Sequence record: MZ574432.2
Direction: 5' to 3' (one strand)
Length of the DNA: 64,000 nt
The notes beneath the pieces are model-generated. The model saw only the letters and a program-made list of their open reading frames with translations. It was not told the DNA's origin and searched no databases. This document shows, in pieces, positions 630 through 39,275 of this stretch. Both the position numbers and the translations under genes were made by a program. How positions within the stretch are numbered: the first letter of the stretch is position 1; the number at the start of each line of letters is the position of its first letter.

Positions 630-1332
630 CAGCCTGGGGCGTTTCGAAGGCCAGTTTCAGGACGTCGTCGACCTTGTCGGGCGCCAGCAGGCCTTGAGCG
701 ACGGCTTGCGCCAGGGCCTGCTCGCCCAGGCGCTTCTTGCCTAGTTCGAAGTAGGCCTCGATCTCGCCATAGGCGCGATCACGCATCTTGTCGGCCTGCT
801 CGGTGGCGCGGTCGACCAGATGCGGCAGGTTGCCCGTCGCCTCGCGCAGCGCCGTCTGGAGTTGTTCGAGAAGCTCGCGAAGCTCGGCCTTGCGCGGCGA
901 GCCGCCGTCGAGAATCTTTTGACACATGTCGACGGCTTCCTTGACGGCCGCCATGGCTGCCTGGGCGTCCCTGGCGATCGCCTTGCCGGCGCGCTCATGG
1001 CCGTCAGCCCGCTGGCTGGTCGGCGGCTCAGCCATGCCGACGTATTGGCCGCCGACCATGCGCCGCTGAATGGTGCAGGGCACGCCCTCGGTGCCGACGC
1101 CGGTGATCAGTTGCGCGAACTGCACTTCGGAAAGGGCGATCTGGATGATCTCGCGATGCCCAAAGAAGCGTGCGTCCACACCGCGTGTGTAGCGATCGGC
1201 CTCCACGACCTTCAGGGTCAGGTAATGACCCACAGGCCATTCGACGCCGACGAGGTTGCGTTCGCCGCTGGTGCGCAGAACCTGGACGCGTCCGAAGGAT
1301 TCGTGCGTTTCCTTGATCTCGTCGTCGGCCAT
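610..1332 (-). CDS. conserved phage hypothetical protein
   Basis: RBS CAGGAGAC; HESFG...SEVQFAQLIT...GVPCT pattern resembles a family seen in large phages. Confidence 0.8.
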   Translation of the reverse strand: MADDEIKETHESFGRVQVLRTSGERNLVGVEWPVGHYLTLKVVEADRYTRGVDARFFGHREIIQIALSEVQFAQLITGVGTEGVPCTIQRRMVGGQYVGMAEPPTSQRADGHERAGKAIARDAQAAMAAVKEAVDMCQKILDGGSPRKAELRELLEQLQTALREATGNLPHLVDRATEQADKMRDRAYGEIEAYFELGKKRLGEQALAQAVAQGLLAPDKVDDVLKLAFETPQAGDAAES

Positions 1333-20343: not shown

Positions 20344-21537
20344 ATGCTGATCCCTGACGATCTGCGCATCCTGCGTGCGGCTTTCGAGGCCCTCAACCGC
20401 GACATCCGCTTCGTGGGCGGCTGGGTTCGCGCTTACATGCTGGGCGAGGCGCCCAAGGACATCGACCTCTGCACCGACGCCAGCATCGAGGAAATGAAGG
20501 AGATCGCCGAAGCCTGCGACGTGGTGCTTGATCTCTACCCCACGGGCGAGGAGCATGGCACCATGACCTTCCGCCTCGACAGCGGGCTCTACGAAATCAC
20601 CTGCCTGCGTCAGGAAACCGCCCACGATGGCCGGCGCGCAGACTGCGTGTTCGGGCAGGACTGGGACGCCGATTTGGCCCGGCGCGATCTGACGATCAAC
20701 GCCATGGCCATGGACTTCGACGGGCGCCTCTACGATCCCCACGGCGGCGCCGTGGACCTCAAGGCCGGCCGCGTACGCTTTGTCGGTGATCCGGTTGATC
20801 GGATGCGCGAGGACTATCTGCGCATCTTGCGCTGGCTGCGCTTCCACGCCCGTTACTCCAAGGGACCGCTGGATTTTGACGCCCGCAACGCCGCCGAGGA
20901 CCTTCGAGATGGTCTGGGGCCGATCAAGGCAGTCCGAACCAAGATCGGCTACACCGTCTCTCGCGAGCGGGTCTGGGACGAGATGAAGAAGATCATCGCC
21001 GGCCCGCGCTCGGCCTACATCCTCTTCCAGATGGTTCGCATGCGCCTGGACGAGCCGCTGGGCTTTGATGGGATCGTCATCGGCGACCGCTACAACGCCG
21101 TCGTGCGCGAAACCGCCGATCCGATCGTGAGGCTGGTGGCGTTGTTCGAGGATACCCGCGACATCGAAGCCCTGGCGACCGATTGGAAATGGAGCCGCGA
21201 GGAGCGGAGCCGCGCGATCTTCCTGTCCAAGTGCCTCCTGGCCGAAGATGTCGACGTTCTCAGCCTCGTCCTCATGGGCGTGTGCGACAAGGACGCCGCC
21301 GAGGACATCTGCATCCTGCGGGAGGATGCCGACCTTTTGGCCTACGTCCGCCGCTGGACGCCGCCAGAGTTTCCGGTAAAGGGTCAGGACCTCCTAGATT
21401 TAGGCATGAAGCCTGGGCCGCAGATGGGCGTTCACCTTGCCAGCCTCCGCCGCCTTTTCGCCGATCATCGCGGGGGCGTCACCAAAGAACAACTGCTCGC
21501 CACCCTGCGCCTGGAGATAGACCTGTGCCCGTCTTGA
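20344..21537 (+). CDS. cca: tRNA nucleotidyltransferase (CCA-adding enzyme / poly(A) polymerase family, class II)
   Basis: FVGGWVR, KDIDL, RRDLTINAM, EDYLRILRWLRF, SRERVWDEMKKI. Confidence 0.9.
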   Translation: MLIPDDLRILRAAFEALNRDIRFVGGWVRAYMLGEAPKDIDLCTDASIEEMKEIAEACDVVLDLYPTGEEHGTMTFRLDSGLYEITCLRQETAHDGRRADCVFGQDWDADLARRDLTINAMAMDFDGRLYDPHGGAVDLKAGRVRFVGDPVDRMREDYLRILRWLRFHARYSKGPLDFDARNAAEDLRDGLGPIKAVRTKIGYTVSRERVWDEMKKIIAGPRSAYILFQMVRMRLDEPLGFDGIVIGDRYNAVVRETADPIVRLVALFEDTRDIEALATDWKWSREERSRAIFLSKCLLAEDVDVLSLVLMGVCDKDAAEDICILREDADLLAYVRRWTPPEFPVKGQDLLDLGMKPGPQMGVHLASLRRLFADHRGGVTKEQLLATLRLEIDLCPS

Positions 21538-32644: not shown

Positions 32645-34486
32645 GTGGCCCAGTCCGAAAACGTGAGCGTCGTGCTCGTCGTCTACGCGCTCTATGAGAC
32701 CGACCGCGCGATCGCGGTCAACGCCGGCCAGCTTCAGATGCAGCGGGACAATCCCGCCGCCCTGGCCTATCTCCCCAAGAGTCAGATCAAGCTGGGCGCG
32801 CCGCTGAAGGTGCATGAGGACAAGGTCCGCTCGCGCGGTATCCCGACCAGCGTCGCCGAACGCCTGGGCATTTCCAAGGTCGGCTACTACGCCGTCGACG
32901 CCGACCGCAACGCGGTCATGTCGCGTGTCGAATGGCGCCCCGTCACCATGCCCAAGTGGCTGGCCGACAAGCACGGCTGGGAAGACCAGGACATCGAGAC
33001 CATGATCGGCGTCTGCAAGACGTGGGCCTATGCCGATGTGTCCGCCGCCGACGTTCGCGCCGCCTTGGCCAAGGACGTGGCGCATGCGTGAGATGAAGCA
33101 GCGCAAGCCCTCGATCCTGCGCTGGGAGTATCAGCGCGGCGTGGCCTTCGGCTACCTCGGCGAACACCGCGTCGCCTCGGTCTACGCCTGGGAAGGCGGG
33201 ATCATGATGAAGGGCCGCTGGCGTTGGCGCATCGAACTGCCGCCGGCGCCAGGACGCAATGCGTCCGGTAAGGGGCTCTCGGAGAGCTATTGCCGCCAGC
33301 AAGCCGCCAACGCGATCCAGCATTTCATCGACACGGCCGGCCTTGCCATCAAAGCGCCGTCAGCGTAAGCATAGACGTCACGAAGTCAGTGAGGATGACA
33401 TGCCTGCGGTCTTGACCGTCGAAGACGCCCTTCGCCTCCTGGGCGACTTGCCCAAGTCGGCGATCCTGGTGATCGGTGGCGAGACCGTGTCGAGCATCAC
33501 CACTCAGCAAGGCCGCCGGCGCGAGGGCTATTTCAACGATAGCTTCAAGCCGCATGCCGACGGCCGCGTGACGGCGGTGCGCTTCTGCCAGACCGACGAG
33601 TTGTCGACCGGCGAAGTCTATGAGCGAATCGTCTGATGGCCGAGGTCCTGAACGTCGAGTTCCACGTCCTCGACGCCGTCGATGACGCCGTGGACTACCT
33701 GACCACCCAGACCGCCGCCGAAGCCAGGGCTCAAGAACTTTACGAGGCGACCGGCGAGCGACATGTCGTCGAGCAGGTCACCTACTACGCCACCGACCGC
33801 GTCGTGCTCGCGGCCTTTCCGCCCTATCCCGAAGAGGATGAAGACCTGTGATCAAGGCCCTGGCCTTCCTCTGCGCCCACGGCGAGTTTGTCCGCCTTGA
33901 GGTCAACGACCATCGCACCTGCTATGAGTCGCCCGAGCGGAACCTTCGCATGCACTCGCTCCTCCCCGAGGAGTGGTGCAACCAGATCGAGCGCGTCCTG
34001 ATCCAGGCGGCCGTCGAGAACGAATCGCCCTTGACCACGGTCAAGGTCTGGACCAACCAGCAGCGCAACGTTGACCGCCAACTGACGGTCGGCGCGTCCT
34101 TGCCCATGACCTTGGCCATGGCGCTCGATCGCCTACGGGTCTCCGAGGCGAACGTCATGCCCCTGCCGGAGTTGGAGGAGGACGCCTCCGCGCTCTTGGA
34201 GCGCTGCATGGCCTATCTCTTCTCCAACGCCCTCTCCTGGTATCTGGACGTCCAGCCCTTCTGCCCCGAGGACGCTATGCCACTCGACGCCCTGATCGAG
34301 TGCAACATGGCCGCGCCAGAGGACTGGATCGGCGAGGAGCCGTGGACGCGTGACTACACCGGTCCGTTCCACGCCCTGATCATCTATCCCGACAACCCTG
34401 TGGGAAGCTGGTGCTTCTACGGCCCGTCCGTGCCGGACCTGCTGATCAAGGGCTATCAGACGCTGAAGGAGTATCGCGCCCAATGA
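32645..34486 (+). other. run of five hypothetical CDSs (32645-33091, 33084-33368, 33400-33636, 33636-33851, 33848-34486)
   Basis: Contiguous coupled ORFs. Confidence 0.7.
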
Positions 34487-35325
34487 CCGAGACCAAGGAC
34501 GCCCTGGGCGACCGGATGAAGGCCTACGAGAAGGTCGAGACGGGGCGGCGCTTCATGCCCGGTCTGCCGGTGATCGTGCGCCTGGATGGTCACGGCTTCT
34601 CGCGCTTCACCAAGGGCCTTCAAAAACCCTTCGACATGCGCATGGTCGCCGCCATGGCCGAGACCACCAAGGCCTTGGTCGAGAAGACCCATGCGCGCCT
34701 GGGCTACACCCAGTCCGACGAGATCACCCTGGTCTTCATGCCCAAGGATGACATCGAGCAGTATTTCTTCGCCGGCAAGGTCTTCAAGATGAAGTCCGTG
34801 CTGGCCGGCCTGTGCTCGACCCTCTTCTATCGCAACTTCGAGCGCGAGTGGCTCGCCCGAACCGGGGACGCCGCCCACGACCTTACGGCCCTGACCCGCT
34901 ACCTGGAGCGTAACCCCCACTTCGATGCGCGCGCCTTCCAGGTGCCCGTCGACTACGAGGCCGCCAACGCCGTCCTCTGGCGCGTCAAAGACGCCGAGCG
35001 CAACGCCGTGCAGATGGCGGCCCAGTCGCTCTACTCGCAAAAGCAGCTTCACAAGCTGTCGACCGAGACCCTGCGCCGCAAGATCGCCGAGGGTGGCCTG
35101 GACTTCGACGCCTATCCTCGCGCCATCCGCAGCGGCAGCTTCTTCCAGTCGGTCACAGAGCTTCGGCCGATCCCGCCCGAGGCGCTGGAGCGGATGAAGG
35201 AGAAAGACCGGCCGGCGGACGGTATGATGCGACGCGCCTCGGTCCAGGAAGTGGCCGCCGAAGGTCCGGTCGCCTACCGAACGGTCGCCGATCTCCTGGG
35301 CATCGTGCCGGTGATGGACGTCTGA
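34483..35325 (+). CDS. tRNA(His) guanylyltransferase Thg1-like protein (3'-5' polymerase)
   Basis: LGDRMKAYE, VRLDGHGFSRFT, YTQSDEI, FDARAF, NAVQM; ATGA overlap at 34483. Confidence 0.9.
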   Translation: MTETKDALGDRMKAYEKVETGRRFMPGLPVIVRLDGHGFSRFTKGLQKPFDMRMVAAMAETTKALVEKTHARLGYTQSDEITLVFMPKDDIEQYFFAGKVFKMKSVLAGLCSTLFYRNFEREWLARTGDAAHDLTALTRYLERNPHFDARAFQVPVDYEAANAVLWRVKDAERNAVQMAAQSLYSQKQLHKLSTETLRRKIAEGGLDFDAYPRAIRSGSFFQSVTELRPIPPEALERMKEKDRPADGMMRRASVQEVAAEGPVAYRTVADLLGIVPVMDV

Positions 35326-36311: not shown

Positions 36312-36905
36312 GTGACCGACAAGACCCTGCCCCCGCCGCCCCACGTCGCCGAAGATGACCAGTTCGAGGAACTGGCGCGGGTGTGGGTGCGCCGCGATGC
36401 GGCTCCCGCCGACGGCGAGAGCCAGATCAGCCTGGGCGTCACGCTCAGCGATCGCGCCAGCTTCCACGAAGTCATGGGCCTGCTGAGCGCGGTCGCCACC
36501 GGCTACATCATCCAGCAGCCCGAAGTCGCCGCCGCCTCGGGCGAGATCAAGGACTACCTGATCGCCCAGGGCACCCAGCAATTGCTGGAGCAGACCGTCG
36601 AGGCCGCCAGCCCGCTGCGGCCCCAGCATCTCCCCGCGCCGGACGAACTGCTCTACGAGCCCGGTTCGGTCAACATCGCCAGCCTCTGGATCGATCCTAC
36701 GCAGGAAGGCACCCACACCATCTTCGCCGGCGAGCCCCAGAAGCTTGGGGCCAAGACGCTCGGCGGCCTCCTGGCGACGATGCTGCTCGAAGCCGGGCGC
36801 AACGCCGACGGCACCTTCAACGTCGACTTCATCGAGGGCCTGCAAACCTCGATCGCCACGACGACCAAGGCGTATCTGGCCCAAGAGGGTCAACCCACGC
36901 AATGA
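36312..36905 (+). CDS. hypothetical protein with two internally similar halves (DUF5076-like)
   Basis: LPPPP...EELARVWV and LPAPD...NIASLWI; family call from memory. Confidence 0.5.
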   Translation: MTDKTLPPPPHVAEDDQFEELARVWVRRDAAPADGESQISLGVTLSDRASFHEVMGLLSAVATGYIIQQPEVAAASGEIKDYLIAQGTQQLLEQTVEAASPLRPQHLPAPDELLYEPGSVNIASLWIDPTQEGTHTIFAGEPQKLGAKTLGGLLATMLLEAGRNADGTFNVDFIEGLQTSIATTTKAYLAQEGQPTQ

Positions 36906-37588
36906 TGCGCAAGGCTCTCCTGTTCTCGTCCGCCCTGGCCGCCATCCTGGCCTTGGCCACCAGCACCGAAGCCGGCGAGATCGCCGGCTCGGTCACCCTG
37001 ACCTCCGCCTACATCTCACGGGGCACCGACCAGAACGTCCTCAACGGCGCGGCCGTCCAGGGCTTCGTGACCTACGCCAAGGGTCCATTCTACGTCAGCG
37101 CCTTCGCCTCGACCATGAACTATGGCGAGGGCACGACCAAGGAACTCGACTTCTTCGGCGGCGTCCGCAAGAGCTACGGTCCTTGGACGGTCGACGTCGG
37201 TTTCGCCAACATCAACTATCCCGACAACCACACGCCGCTGAACTTCGTCGAGTACGATCTGAAGATCGATCGCGCGGTCGGCAAGGGCAACGTCGGCGTC
37301 TGGCTCGGCTACACCGACGCCTACTTCAACACCTATGGCCAGGGCGTCTGGACCGAGGCCCATGTCAGCTACCCGATCACCAGCACGGTGTCGATCAGCG
37401 GCGCGGTCGCCAACCAGGACCTGCCCAACAACTTCGACTACCGGACCTGGAACGTCGGCGTCACCAAGGCCTTCGCCCATGGCGTCTCGGCCGATCTGCG
37501 CTATAGCGACACCGATCGCCACGACCTGGACCCGCGCTGGAACACCTACGGCGCGCGGACCTCGCTGACCCTGTCCAAGAGCTTCTGA
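36902..37588 (+). CDS. outer-membrane beta-barrel protein (TorF / TIGR02001-like putative porin), 228 aa
   Basis: Sec signal peptide ending STEA; GSVTLTSAYISRGTDQ...AVQG; alternating beta-strands; C-terminal Phe (LTLSKSF). Confidence 0.8.
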   Translation: MMRKALLFSSALAAILALATSTEAGEIAGSVTLTSAYISRGTDQNVLNGAAVQGFVTYAKGPFYVSAFASTMNYGEGTTKELDFFGGVRKSYGPWTVDVGFANINYPDNHTPLNFVEYDLKIDRAVGKGNVGVWLGYTDAYFNTYGQGVWTEAHVSYPITSTVSISGAVANQDLPNNFDYRTWNVGVTKAFAHGVSADLRYSDTDRHDLDPRWNTYGARTSLTLSKSF

Positions 37589-37599
37589 AGGGGGAGCCG

Positions 37600-38235
37600 A
37601 TGAGCCTGCTTGAAATCCTCGCCACCGCCGTGACGGTCGCCTGCGTCCTACTGGCCGTCAAGCGTTCGACGTGGCAGTACCCGGTCGGGATCGTCGGTAC
37701 GATCCTGTTCTTCTTCGTCTTCCAAGGCGCCAAGCTCTACGCCAGCGCCATGCTCCAGGTGTTCTTCACCCTCGTCCAGGTCTACGGCTGGTGGTACTGG
37801 ACGCGCGGCGATCGAGGCAAGTCGCCGCCGATCACCTCCTGGAGCCCGGCCTTCACCGGGGCGATCGTGGTTGCCGGCCTCGTGGTGGGCGTGGTGCTGA
37901 GCATGATTCTCAACGCCTTCACCGACGCCAAGGTGGCGCTCTGGGACTCGGCGATCTTTGGCCTGTCCATGGCCGCTCAGTTCCTGCTCGACCGCAAGAA
38001 GCTGGAGAACTGGACCGTCTGGGGTCTGGTCAACATCATCTCGGTCTTCGTCTACTGGCAGCAAGGCCTGACCGTCGCGGCGATCCTCTATGCCGGCCTG
38101 TTCGTCAACGCCTTCTGGGGCCACTATGAGTGGGCCAAGGCCAAGCGCGCCCAGAAGATCGTCTGGGACGCCGAGGCCCAGAAGTACCCGGCCGCGCCCA
38201 TCCATGAACCGAAGCCTGGGGACCTGTTGACTTGA
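37600..38235 (+). CDS. pnuC: nicotinamide riboside transporter PnuC
   Basis: STWQYPVG, YASAMLQVFF...YGWWYW, RKKLENWTVWGLVNIIS; multiple TM segments. Confidence 0.9.
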   Translation: MSLLEILATAVTVACVLLAVKRSTWQYPVGIVGTILFFFVFQGAKLYASAMLQVFFTLVQVYGWWYWTRGDRGKSPPITSWSPAFTGAIVVAGLVVGVVLSMILNAFTDAKVALWDSAIFGLSMAAQFLLDRKKLENWTVWGLVNIISVFVYWQQGLTVAAILYAGLFVNAFWGHYEWAKAKRAQKIVWDAEAQKYPAAPIHEPKPGDLLT

Positions 38236-39275
38236 ACCACGCCGTCGAAGTCCCCGCCCATCCCTTCGAAGCCAAGCCCGAGCGCGGCTTTGTCCTGGGC
38301 AAGTTCATGCCGCCGACCGAGGGCCATCGGTTCCTCTGCGAGTTCGCCAGAGAGTACGTGCAGAAGCTGACCATCCTGGTCTGCTCGATGCCCGATGAGC
38401 CCATCGACGGCTTCCTGCGCTTCCAGTGGATGCGCGAGATGTTCCCGGACTGCAATGTCCAGTGGTGTCAGGAAATCCTGCCCCAGGAACCCGTCGGCGA
38501 GGACCCGGAGTTCTGGTCGACCTGGGCCGGCGTCATCCAGAAGTACGGCAGCCGCTACGGCGAGCCTTATCGCCCCGATGTCGTCTTCGCCTCGGAGACC
38601 TATGGTCACAAGCTGGCCGCCAGCGTCGGCGCGCGGTTCGTGCCCTGCGACATCAGTCGCACCGCGCGCGACATCTCCGCGACCCGCATCCGCGCCCAGC
38701 CCCTGGCCAACTGGTCCTACATCCCCAACGTCGTGCGCCCGCACTTCGTCAAGCGGGTGACCATGTTCGGCCCCGAAAGCAGCGGCAAGTCGACCCTGGC
38801 GACCGCGCTCGGCAAGGTCTTCGACACCATCGTCGTGCCCGAGTATGGTCGCACCTATACCGAGCAGTTCGGAGCCGACGTCGGCGCCGAGGACCTGATC
38901 CGCATCGTCCAGGGTCACCGCGCCAGCGTGGCGGCGGCCAAGCGCCAAGCCAACCGCATCATGTTCGAGGACACCGACCCGATCATGAGCGCGGTCTGGG
39001 CCGACATGCTGGGCGTCGCGCGCGACCCCTGGTTCGACAGCTTTGACGACAAGGCCGACCTTTATCTGCTGTGCGGCGTCGACATCCCCTGGGAAGACGA
39101 CGGGACGCGCTACTTCCCCAGGCAGTCCGACCGCGAGCGCTTCTATGATCTCTGCAAGGCGGAACTCGAACGGCGCGGCTGCCGCTACATCGAGATCAGC
39201 GGGTCCATGCTGGAGCGCCGGGTCCAGGCGATCGCGGCAGTGACCAAAACCTTTGGCATCGAGGCGGCGATTTGA
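38232..39275 (+). CDS. nadR: bifunctional NMN adenylyltransferase / ribosylnicotinamide kinase (NadR, no HTH)
   Basis: GKFMPPTEGH, ISATRIR, Walker A GPESSGKST, EYGRTY, DTD, WEDDGTR. Confidence 0.9.
   Translation: MNHAVEVPAHPFEAKPERGFVLGKFMPPTEGHRFLCEFAREYVQKLTILVCSMPDEPIDGFLRFQWMREMFPDCNVQWCQEILPQEPVGEDPEFWSTWAGVIQKYGSRYGEPYRPDVVFASETYGHKLAASVGARFVPCDISRTARDISATRIRAQPLANWSYIPNVVRPHFVKRVTMFGPESSGKSTLATALGKVFDTIVVPEYGRTYTEQFGADVGAEDLIRIVQGHRASVAAAKRQANRIMFEDTDPIMSAVWADMLGVARDPWFDSFDDKADLYLLCGVDIPWEDDGTRYFPRQSDRERFYDLCKAELERRGCRYIEISGSMLERRVQAIAAVTKTFGIEAAI

Follow-up and report, generated by a model that had tools for sequence, protein, structure and literature searches.

A Thg1-like protein of a Caulobacter phage that is very unlikely to give tRNA-His its G-1 identity mark

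Introduction

What does a homologue of the tRNA-His guanylyltransferase Thg1 do in a phage whose host lineage has given up the extra 5' guanosine (G-1) of tRNA-His? Eukaryotic Thg1 adds G-1 opposite A73 without a template, providing the identity mark for HisRS, and its HINNLYN motif reads the tRNA-His anticodon (PMC6471195). Every bacterial or archaeal Thg1-like protein (TLP) assayed favours 5'-truncated tRNAs, whatever their species, above the addition of N-1 to tRNA-His, and in Dictyostelium and Acanthamoeba mitochondria a TLP restores the start of the acceptor stem, with the 3' strand serving as template (PMC6471195, PMC3701042). The tRNA-His of C. crescentus has A73 and no G-1; its HisRS recognises the anticodon and U72, charges the G-1-less tRNA fully, and loses 5-fold in charging when G-1 is added (PMC3064791).

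The gene considered here lies in a 64,000-nucleotide stretch of DNA, which we call the window. An earlier note on its letters inferred a Caulobacter-type host without G-1 on tRNA-His. It proposed that the enzyme is unlikely to set His identity, and that it instead repairs tRNA 5' ends, for example against host anti-phage RNases, as bacterial TLPs can repair 5'-truncated tRNAs, or matures phage tRNAs. The literature cited above bears out the state of tRNA-His, for C. crescentus, and the repair ability of bacterial TLPs. We know of no natural substrate for bacterial-type TLPs, which repair 5'-truncated tRNAs in vitro and whose biological role is unsettled.

Results

The window is 100% identical to positions 186001-250000 of the giant Caulobacter phage BL47 (Bertelyvirus; MZ574432.2), whose host is C. 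vibrioides CB15. Thus, the host that the earlier note had inferred is correct. The start ATG of the TLP gene (gp349; Table 1) shares an ATGA with the stop of the upstream gene. The BL47 record labels gp349 'hypothetical protein', and phages C1 and RB23 encode an identical protein labelled tRNAHis-5'-guanylyltransferase. Among 10 neighbouring or large ORFs, we found no informative Pfam or PHROG match apart from a Gcw_chp porin-like protein.

Table 1. Positions in the window of the TLP gene, its motifs and the CCA-adding enzyme gene of phage BL47.
Feature	Position	Strand	Basis or remark
CCA-adding tRNA nucleotidyltransferase gp320	20344..21537	+	PF01743 E 3.1e-28 and annotation
Thg1-like protein (TLP) gene	34483..35325	+	ORF, 280 aa; BL47 gp349
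RLDG motif, residues 33-36	34579..34590	+	4kgk alignment; R33, D35 invariant in 37 homologues
QSDEI motif, residues 77-81	34711..34725	+	4kgk alignment; S78, D79, E80 invariant in 37 homologues
WRVKDAERN segment, W166-N174	34978..35004	+	alignments to BtTLP and Candida Thg1

Sequence and modelled fold confirm gp349 as a Thg1-family protein of bacterial TLP type with an intact active site. It matches Pfam Thg1 (PF04446) with an E of 8.7e-30 and 103.8 bits (cut-off 29.2) over profile positions 2-130 of 130, and PHROG 4717, 'tRNA-His guanylyltransferase', with an E of 2.4e-66. Its best solved relative is the Bacillus thuringiensis TLP (BtTLP, 4kgk; E 1.2e-23), compared with 1.8e-6 for Candida Thg1 and 5e-4 for human Thg1. 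The AlphaFold2 model has a pLDDT of 92.5 and a pTM of 0.90. When this model was searched against the PDB, all 32 matches at E<=0.001 were Thg1/TLP chains, with BtTLP (4kgm/4kgk) at the top and 4kgm the best (E 9e-14).

The active-site residues named for BtTLP (PMC3701042), E12, R28, D30, K43, S74, D75 and E76, align with E16, R33, D35, K48, S78, D79 and E80 of gp349. In BtTLP, R28 binds the incoming NTP, D30 is a metal-binding carboxylate, and the S74/D75/E76 group holds the second metal carboxylate and a third conserved carboxylate (PMC3701042). The three family carboxylates (D30, D75 and E76 in BtTLP; D29, D76 and E77 in the human enzyme) are therefore all present in gp349, as D35, D79 and E80. 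In the alignment of 37 sequences, E16 was also invariant and position 48 was K or R. The RLDG and QSDEI signatures read earlier from the letters proved intact. K102, R150 and N174, the conserved asparagine of the activation step, were likewise invariant, as were W166, R167, D170 and A171. The last four and N174 belong to WRVKDAERN, the TLP-type counterpart of the region that bears HINNLYN in eukaryotic Thg1; the gp349 segment WRVKDAERNAVQM aligns with Candida WRQVDCHIN..., and HINNLYN is missing.

gp349 and BtTLP thus belong to one family, have the same fold and are about 32% identical across some 200 residues; they share all of the named catalytic and NTP-binding residues and a DAxxN segment of the TLP type. 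They differ in that gp349 is phage-encoded, that its C-terminal part is 35 residues longer and is predicted with confidence to be folded, and that both G-1 and a TLP are missing from its host lineage. With eukaryotic Thg1 (yeast, human, Candida; 3otb, 3wbz), gp349 shares the superfamily, the palm-like fold and the two-metal carboxylates, but the sequence similarity is weak (E 1e-6 to 5e-4).

The gp349 gene is being maintained, because the protein is identical across seven BL47-group records and the TLPs of CcrSC and CcrBL9 are 67-68% identical to it. We found 1598 homologues at E<=1e-10. Homologous genes occur in 149 phage records, mainly of jumbo or tRNA-rich phages; gp349 adds one member to a family whose annotation is found in about 150 records of phages. 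Its homologues in PHROG 4717 include CcrColossus gp300, CcrBL9 gp337, Sinorhizobium phiM12 thg1 and Pseudomonas 201phi2-1 gp319. The PHROG label carries over the eukaryotic function, which does not fit phages of Caulobacterales, Rhizobiales and Rhodobacterales. Further host orders without G-1 also have phages with TLPs (hosts Brevundimonas, Phaeobacter/Ruegeria, Sinorhizobium, Agrobacterium). On the host side, the C. vibrioides control has no TLP, and in the order to which a Hyphomonadaceae genome belongs only one of 201 genomes has one. Our literature search found no functional study of phage TLPs, and the 2019 review of Thg1 and TLPs does not mention phages (PMC6471195).

The tRNA-His gene of BL47 sits outside the window. 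It has an identity set of the host type (GUG anticodon and G1·U72), C2-G71, U at -1 and G73, and it ends at G73-C74, immediately abutting tRNA-Ala. Because residue 73 is G, G-1 cannot be templated. The earlier note had raised the possibility of a phage tRNA-His with C73 that needs G-1; we found G73, U-1 and the host-like G1·U72 instead. An enzyme that sets identity through G-1 would act on C73 by templating or on A73 in the eukaryotic mode, and it would serve a G-1-dependent HisRS, of which we found none in phage or host. Profile searches found no HisRS in BL47, CcrColossus or Bambus. A weak tRNA-synt_His match in BL47 (positions 168415-169137 of the record, outside the window) was rejected as a HisRS: its 241 aa form a class II core, which a profile search shows to be GlyRS-like, and it is the sole aaRS-like ORF of BL47. 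It is thus very unlikely that gp349 sets His identity through G-1, as the earlier note had suspected; G-1 is neither templatable on this tRNA nor needed by the host HisRS.

BL47 encodes 27 tRNAs and a permuted, two-piece tmRNA. The gene of the CCA-adding enzyme, gp320, lies 13 kb upstream of gp349 on the same strand. Two tRNA genes (His and Val-GAC) end at N73-C74, and gp320 is probably needed to complete their products. It is possibly the 3'-end counterpart of the TLP. A 'tRNA repair kit' of TLP, RtcB and CCA enzyme was considered and rejected. RtcB was not found in BL47, whereas it was found in CcrColossus, Bambus and the TLP-less phiCbK-type phage Magneto, and five TLP carriers that have few tRNAs or none lack the CCA enzyme. 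The patchy occurrence of these two enzymes among TLP-carrying phages thus leaves no consistent set.

We also scored acceptor pairs 1-3 in every tRNA of 20 phages. The BL47 tRNA genes have no mismatch in these pairs except in the initiator-like tRNA-Met, and in this they differ from the substrates of mitochondrial 5' editing. TLP-carrying phages showed no excess of acceptor-stem mismatches over Magneto. Mismatches were rare, occurred chiefly in initiator-like tRNA-Met and were also seen in Magneto; editing of the mitochondrial kind was not supported.

Among Caulobacter phages, TLP and tRNA-His go together. tRNA-His was present in all five TLP-carrying lineages examined, and the two types of tRNA-His gene are confined to 11 Bertelyvirus and 4 Colossusvirus records, a set identical with that of the TLP holders. 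Magneto has 28 tRNAs and His is missing from them. One gain or loss in an ancestor may account for this co-distribution. Elsewhere, the TLP occurs in Staphylococcus phage PMBT8, which has no tRNAs, in 201phi2-1 (only Leu), Yeet (only Gly) and 4L372D (only Thr), and in BcepSaruman, whose 9 tRNAs do not include His. The family is therefore not tied generally to phage tRNA-His. We found no enrichment of physical linkage either: among the tRNAs within 10-kb flanks of 80 TLP loci from IMG/VR, 1 of 51 was tRNA-His.

The acceptor ends of the phage tRNA-His genes are unusually varied. G73 is found in BL47, CcrBL9, CcrSC and an unrelated 335-kb phage contig from IMG/VR, U1xU72 in CcrColossus and CcrPW, and C1-G72 with C73 in Gurke. 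The tRNA-His genes of Bacillus phage Bc431v3 and Rhodococcus phage Weasels2 have C1-G72, A73 and no encoded G-1; the hosts of these two phages do need G-1. Ralstonia phage RsoM2USA and Vibrio phage D69 carry a TLP and have tRNA-His genes that already encode G-1:C73.

Discussion

We favour, with confidence about evenly balanced, a model in which gp349 repairs or maintains the 5' ends of tRNAs by templated 3'-5' addition. We propose that gp349 would be an active template-dependent 3'-5' nucleotidyl transferase of the bacterial TLP type. It would first activate the 5' phosphate of a tRNA, using ATP or GTP, and would then extend that end with nucleotides complementary to the acceptor stem's 3' strand. 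During infection it would most likely rebuild or proof-read the 5' ends of the 27 phage tRNAs, of host tRNAs, or of both, and at these ends it would complement the phage CCA-adding enzyme at the 3' ends. In the BL47/Caulobacter pair it would make no G-1 identity mark on tRNA-His. The model draws on the TLP type and conserved catalytic residues of gp349, the substrate preference of the TLPs assayed, the lack of a need or a template for G-1, the absence of a host TLP, and the occurrence of TLPs in phages without tRNA-His, away from tRNA-His genes and in phages of further G-1-less hosts. That the enzyme is active, with tRNAs as its substrates and repair as its purpose, is what we infer.

Phage-encoded tRNA repair is a familiar concept. 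T4 Pnkp and Rnl1 counter the PrrC anticodon nuclease by ligating the anticodon loop. The comparison with gp349 is an analogy only, as chemistry and site differ, and we know of no cognate nuclease for tRNA 5' ends. Nor do we know of a source of 5'-truncated tRNAs in Caulobacter. We found no description of a defence that trims tRNA 5' ends; the tRNA-targeting systems that we found cleave in the anticodon arm or at the 3' CCA tail. With no such defence described, no RtcB in BL47 and uninformative neighbours, the suggestion that gp349 repairs tRNAs against host anti-phage RNases has no direct support. More broadly, the patchy RtcB and CCA enzymes, the unrevealing neighbour genes, the lack of a mismatch excess, and the perfect coincidence of TLP and tRNA-His in Caulobacter phages run against repair.

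This coincidence speaks for the main rival, less likely but to be taken seriously, namely that gp349 is dedicated to maturing the phage's own tRNA-His and gives it an acceptor end unlike the host's. The enzyme might rebuild position +1 or add a templated N-1, which would be C-1 in Bertelyviruses, facing G73, and U-1 or G-1 in their relatives, facing A73 or C73. Templated N-1 addition is feasible, because in yeast BtTLP places U-1 opposite A73 (PMC6471195). Apart from the shared distribution, with Magneto lacking both genes, this possibility draws on the frequency of non-standard acceptor ends among the tRNA-His genes of TLP-carrying phages and on phiM12, which has only 8 tRNAs and keeps His among them. 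However, an extra 5' G slightly inhibits the host HisRS and the phage has no HisRS of its own, so that N-1 would bring no evident benefit. The genes of RsoM2USA and D69 that already encode G-1:C73, the phages that carry a TLP and lack tRNA-His, the lack of genomic linkage, and the possible single ancestral event behind the co-distribution also speak against it, as does a U1xU72 tRNA (Ile) in TLP-less Magneto. Through the shared distribution in Caulobacter phages, the earlier note's alternative that the enzyme matures phage tRNAs has gained weight.

Two schemes are more speculative, and we jointly regard them as rather unlikely. TLP and tRNA-His may form a unit in which the TLP adds C-1 opposite the unusual G73; the extra C-1:G73 pair, which would mirror the canonical G-1:C73, would mark or protect the phage tRNA-His, perhaps against quality control by the host or a host nuclease that attacks acceptor ends. 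In the other scheme, the TLP may be a counter-defence that regrows tRNA 5' ends cut by an undescribed host tRNase. If one of them is true, a viral 3'-5' polymerase would for the first time have been shown to have a biological role.

It is less likely still that gp349 acts on another RNA, such as the 5' ends of transcripts of the phage or its two-piece tmRNA, or that it was inherited along with the tRNA region as a nearly neutral passenger. In vitro, TLPs can use templates other than tRNA (PMC6471195), BL47 has its permuted tmRNA, and TLPs occur in phages without tRNA genes. However, gene context points to no non-tRNA substrate, and a passenger would not be expected to keep strictly conserved catalytic residues in several phage genera. 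The remaining reading, that gp349 is a classical tRNA-His guanylyltransferase that adds G-1 for HisRS recognition, as the family name and the GenBank and PHROG labels say, is highly improbable given a host tRNA-His without G-1, a host HisRS that G-1 impairs, a phage tRNA-His whose G73 cannot template G, the lack of a detected phage HisRS, and a TLP-type protein without HINNLYN.

Repair of tRNA 5' ends remains our preferred reading, and the value of gp349 is that host biology rules out the textbook His-identity role of the enzyme. As the host lineage gave up G-1, a strictly conserved TLP in these phages is not explicable by His identity, and the eukaryotic role would be of no use in BL47 and Caulobacter. 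The GenBank label 'tRNAHis guanylyltransferase' probably misstates the function of gp349, because of G73, a host HisRS that does not need G-1, and the missing phage HisRS; the database label is probably misleading for these phages in general. Phages of Caulobacter, Brevundimonas, Rhizobiales and Rhodobacterales are informative on the role of TLPs because their hosts lack G-1. The host of BL47 and related phages, C. vibrioides CB15, is genetically tractable and has no TLP, which makes this pair a favourable setting for studying that role in vivo. In public sequence reads, 6-7% of the sampled words were found, in two wastewater metagenome runs only.

Identification of gp349 as a Thg1-like protein

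The window is 100% identical to positions 186001-250000 of Caulobacter phage BL47 (MZ574432.2, Bertelyvirus, 326,794 bp), whose host is C. vibrioides CB15. Thus, the Caulobacter-type host that the earlier note had deduced is correct. The BL47 gene gp349 lies within a long run of same-strand genes. Its product matches Pfam Thg1 (PF04446, E 8.7e-30) over all 130 profile positions, and PHROG 4717, 'tRNA-His guanylyltransferase' (E 2.4e-66). The closest solved structure is the Thg1-like protein (TLP) of Bacillus thuringiensis (BtTLP, 4kgk, E 1.2e-23), whereas eukaryotic Thg1 proteins gave only 1e-6 to 5e-4. The RLDG and QSDEI catalytic motifs that the earlier note had pointed out are real and occupy residues 33-36 and 77-81. 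The functional residues of BtTLP, E12, R28, D30, K43, S74, D75 and E76 (Hyde et al. 2013, PMC3701042), align with gp349 E16, R33, D35, K48, S78, D79 and E80, respectively. Among 37 homologues (42-68% identity), E16, R33, D35, S78, D79 and E80 are invariant, as are K102, R150, W166, R167, D170 and N174; K48 is K or R. In eukaryotic Thg1 the HINNLYN motif reads the His anticodon, whereas the same segment of gp349, WRVKDAERNAVQM, has the TLP form. The AlphaFold2 model was confident (pLDDT 92.5), and all 32 of its significant PDB matches were Thg1 or TLP chains, with BtTLP first. Judged by its sequence, gp349 is a real, intact TLP of the bacterial type.

The BL47 record labels gp349 'hypothetical protein'. 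The identical protein of sister phages C1 and RB23 is annotated tRNAHis-5'-guanylyltransferase, as are the homologues in CcrBL9 and CcrSC (67-68% identity) and in CcrPW and CcrColossus (49%). As tblastn found homologues in 149 phage records, phage annotations already cover the TLP family, of which gp349 is an additional member. Our literature search found no paper studying a phage TLP, and public read data were uninformative, with 6-7% of the sampled words in only two wastewater metagenome runs.

Host and phage tRNA-His

No Thg1-family gene was found in the Caulobacter vibrioides control genome. We also sampled 201 genomes of the order to which a Hyphomonadaceae genome belongs, an order we take to be GTDB Caulobacterales; that genome alone had a match. 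In species-representative genomes, the best cellular matches to gp349 were mostly from Myxococcota and Planctomycetota, with a few from alphaproteobacteria, and none of the best 80 came from Caulobacter or Brevundimonas. The alphaproteobacterial TLP of Enterovirga rhinocerotis (48% identity) adjoins tRNA-Pro and short ORFs, a locus that probably marks a prophage.

Caulobacterales, Parvularculales, Rhizobiales and Rhodobacterales have a tRNA-His without G-1, the extra 5' G, but with G1-U72, A73 and a 9-nt D loop (Yuan et al., PMC3064791). The C. crescentus HisRS reads the three anticodon bases and U72; U72C costs 91-fold, whereas A73C costs only 3-fold and addition of G-1 costs 5-fold (PMC3064791).

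The window has no tRNA genes; elsewhere BL47 has 27 and a two-piece tmRNA. Its tRNA-His gene reads guuugU/G1CUGAAA at the 5' end and UUUCAGU72G73C74/G at the 3' end, the last G being +1 of tRNA-Ala. It agrees with the host type in G1·U72, C2-G71, the GUG anticodon and G37, but departs from it by U-1, G73 (not A or C) and an 8-nt D loop. CCA is encoded in 25 of the 27 genes; only His and Val(GAC) stop at N73-C74, abutting the next tRNA. The parallel ending of Val(GAC) supports G as the discriminator base of tRNA-His. Both tRNAs should rely on the RNase P cut of the downstream neighbour and on CCA completion, a job for the CCA-adding enzyme of the phage.

The tRNA array runs Pro-Thr-Lys-Leu-Leu-Leu-His-Ala-Ser-Ser-Ser-Trp. 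The short frame preceding it encodes almost only residues that the tRNAs of this array carry (T, L, A, K, P, S, W and H), with two His. Such a composition points to use of the phage tRNA-His in decoding, without settling the role of the TLP. Separately, an initiator-like tRNA-Met (UGCGGGG...CCCCGCU, record 150582-150658) has a U1xU72 mismatch and C73, compared with C1xA72/A73 in bacteria; related phages hold similar forms.

Features of BL47 and related phages (window or record coordinates; L010 and L038 are pieces of the BL47 record)
Feature	Location	Strand	Remarks
gp349 (TLP)	window 34483-35325	+	280 codons; ATG overlaps preceding gene's stop as ATGA
CCA-adding tRNA nucleotidyltransferase	window 20344-21537	+	PF01743, E 3e-28; record annotation agrees
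Gcw_chp/porin-like exported protein and genes 3' of it	window 36902-39275	+	PF09694, E 5e-18
tRNA-His(GUG)	record 83009-83081
Spacerless pair His/Ala	record 83009-83157 (L010:2026-2174)		His ends G73-C74, then tRNA-Ala +1
Spacerless pair Val(GAC)/Ile	record 90160-90308		Val ends A73-C74, then tRNA-Ile +1
Short frame	L010:~990-1106	+	~39 codons from internal ATG; 5' of Pro-to-Trp tRNA array
Stand-alone class II aaRS catalytic core	record 168415-169137 (L038:8415-9137)	minus	241 aa; annotated 'hypothetical'
RtcB RNA ligase, CcrColossus (Colossusvirus)	168272-169417
RtcB RNA ligase, phiCbK-type Magneto	135407-136537
RtcB RNA ligase, Brevundimonas phage Bambus	167886-169025
tRNA-His end, Bertelyviruses			G1·U72/G73
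tRNA-His end, IMG/VR jumbo-phage contig (335,552 bp)	L264:17512-17587		U-1, G1·U72, G73, CCA encoded; unrelated, TLP 40% identity
tRNA-His end, Colossusviruses			U1xU72 mismatch, A73
tRNA-His end, Brevundimonas phage Bambus			C1-G72/A73
tRNA-His end, Gurke			C1-G72/C73
tRNA-His end, Phaeobacter MD18			G1·U72/U73
tRNA-His end, phiM12			U1·G72/A73
tRNA-His end, Bacillus Bc431v3 and Rhodococcus Weasels2			C1-G72/A73, G-1 not encoded; hosts need G-1

Possible roles of gp349

The bacterial and archaeal TLPs tested so far all favour the repair of 5'-truncated tRNAs (PMC3701042, PMC6471195). By default from this biochemistry, gp349 would rebuild such tRNAs by templated addition, whatever their species, and we give templated tRNA 5'-end repair or maintenance about an even chance of being its role. 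A number of comparisons among phages are in keeping with a role not confined to tRNA-His. Staphylococcus PMBT8 has a TLP and no tRNA genes; 201phi2-1, Yeet and 4L372D have a TLP with one or two non-His tRNAs; BcepSaruman has nine tRNAs, none for His; and Yersinia fHe-Yen9-04 has no His among 28 ARAGORN calls (32 cmsearch hits). Ralstonia RsoM2USA and Vibrio D69 have retained a TLP even with tRNA-His genes that encode G-1:C73 themselves. At 80 IMG/VR loci, His accounted for 1 of the 51 tRNAs within 10 kb of the TLP. TLPs are also found repeatedly in phages whose hosts, like Caulobacter, do without G-1 (Brevundimonas, Phaeobacter, Sinorhizobium and Agrobacterium).

The main rival, that gp349 is dedicated to processing the phage tRNA-His, is possible but the less likely reading. 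Of the Caulobacter phages, BL47, CcrBL9, CcrSC, CcrPW and CcrColossus all have both TLP and tRNA-His, while phiCbK-type Magneto has 28 tRNAs and neither; the two tRNA-His gene types of these phages occur only in the 15 TLP-holding records. However, the co-occurrence in Caulobacter phages is weak as statistics because it may reflect a single evolutionary event. The acceptor ends of tRNA-His are very irregular across TLP-carrying phages, and for Bc431v3 and Weasels2 addition of N-1 by the TLP is the simplest route to a working tRNA-His. BtTLP adds U-1 opposite A73 (PMC6471195), but the equivalent in BL47 would be C-1 opposite G73, with no evident benefit given the host HisRS data. Whether gp349 mends 5' ends broadly or acts at a step particular to tRNA-His is directly testable in a tractable host without its own TLP.

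That gp349 acts on a non-tRNA substrate or is a near-neutral passenger seems improbable. Classical G-1 addition to tRNA-His, as the annotation implies, is hardly credible here, since G73 cannot template the addition of a G, the HisRS of the host works without G-1, and the phage encodes no HisRS. The earlier note had proposed looking for a phage tRNA-His with C73 that needs G-1, and G73 was found instead; its view that the enzyme is unlikely to set His identity is well supported by these results, by the host identity and by the lack of a host TLP. Amoebal-mitochondria-type 5' editing of mismatched acceptor stems was not indicated.

As to the form that 5'-end repair might take, the suggestion that it counters host anti-phage RNases found no direct support. 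The tRNA-targeting defences found in the literature act on anticodon arms or on 3' CCA tails rather than on 5' ends. RtcB is absent from BL47, the CCA enzyme is absent from TLP-carrying phages with few tRNAs, and the genes around gp349 gave no clue to function.

Other genes

A search for a BL47 HisRS gave one weak tRNA-synt_His match, the class II core, which profile searches place with GlyRS (E 8e-14 to alpha2 GlyRS) and which has no anticodon-binding domain. It is conserved in Bertelyviruses, the Brevundimonas Bambus group, Sinorhizobium Phosso, Xanthomonas XbC2 and phages >630 kb, and metagenomes hold a further 247 homologues of ~240 aa. The Gcw_chp/porin-like gene lies directly 5' of genes for a PnuC-like nicotinamide riboside transporter and a ribosylnicotinamide kinase; together they may form a phage-borne outer- plus inner-membrane set for NAD-precursor uptake.
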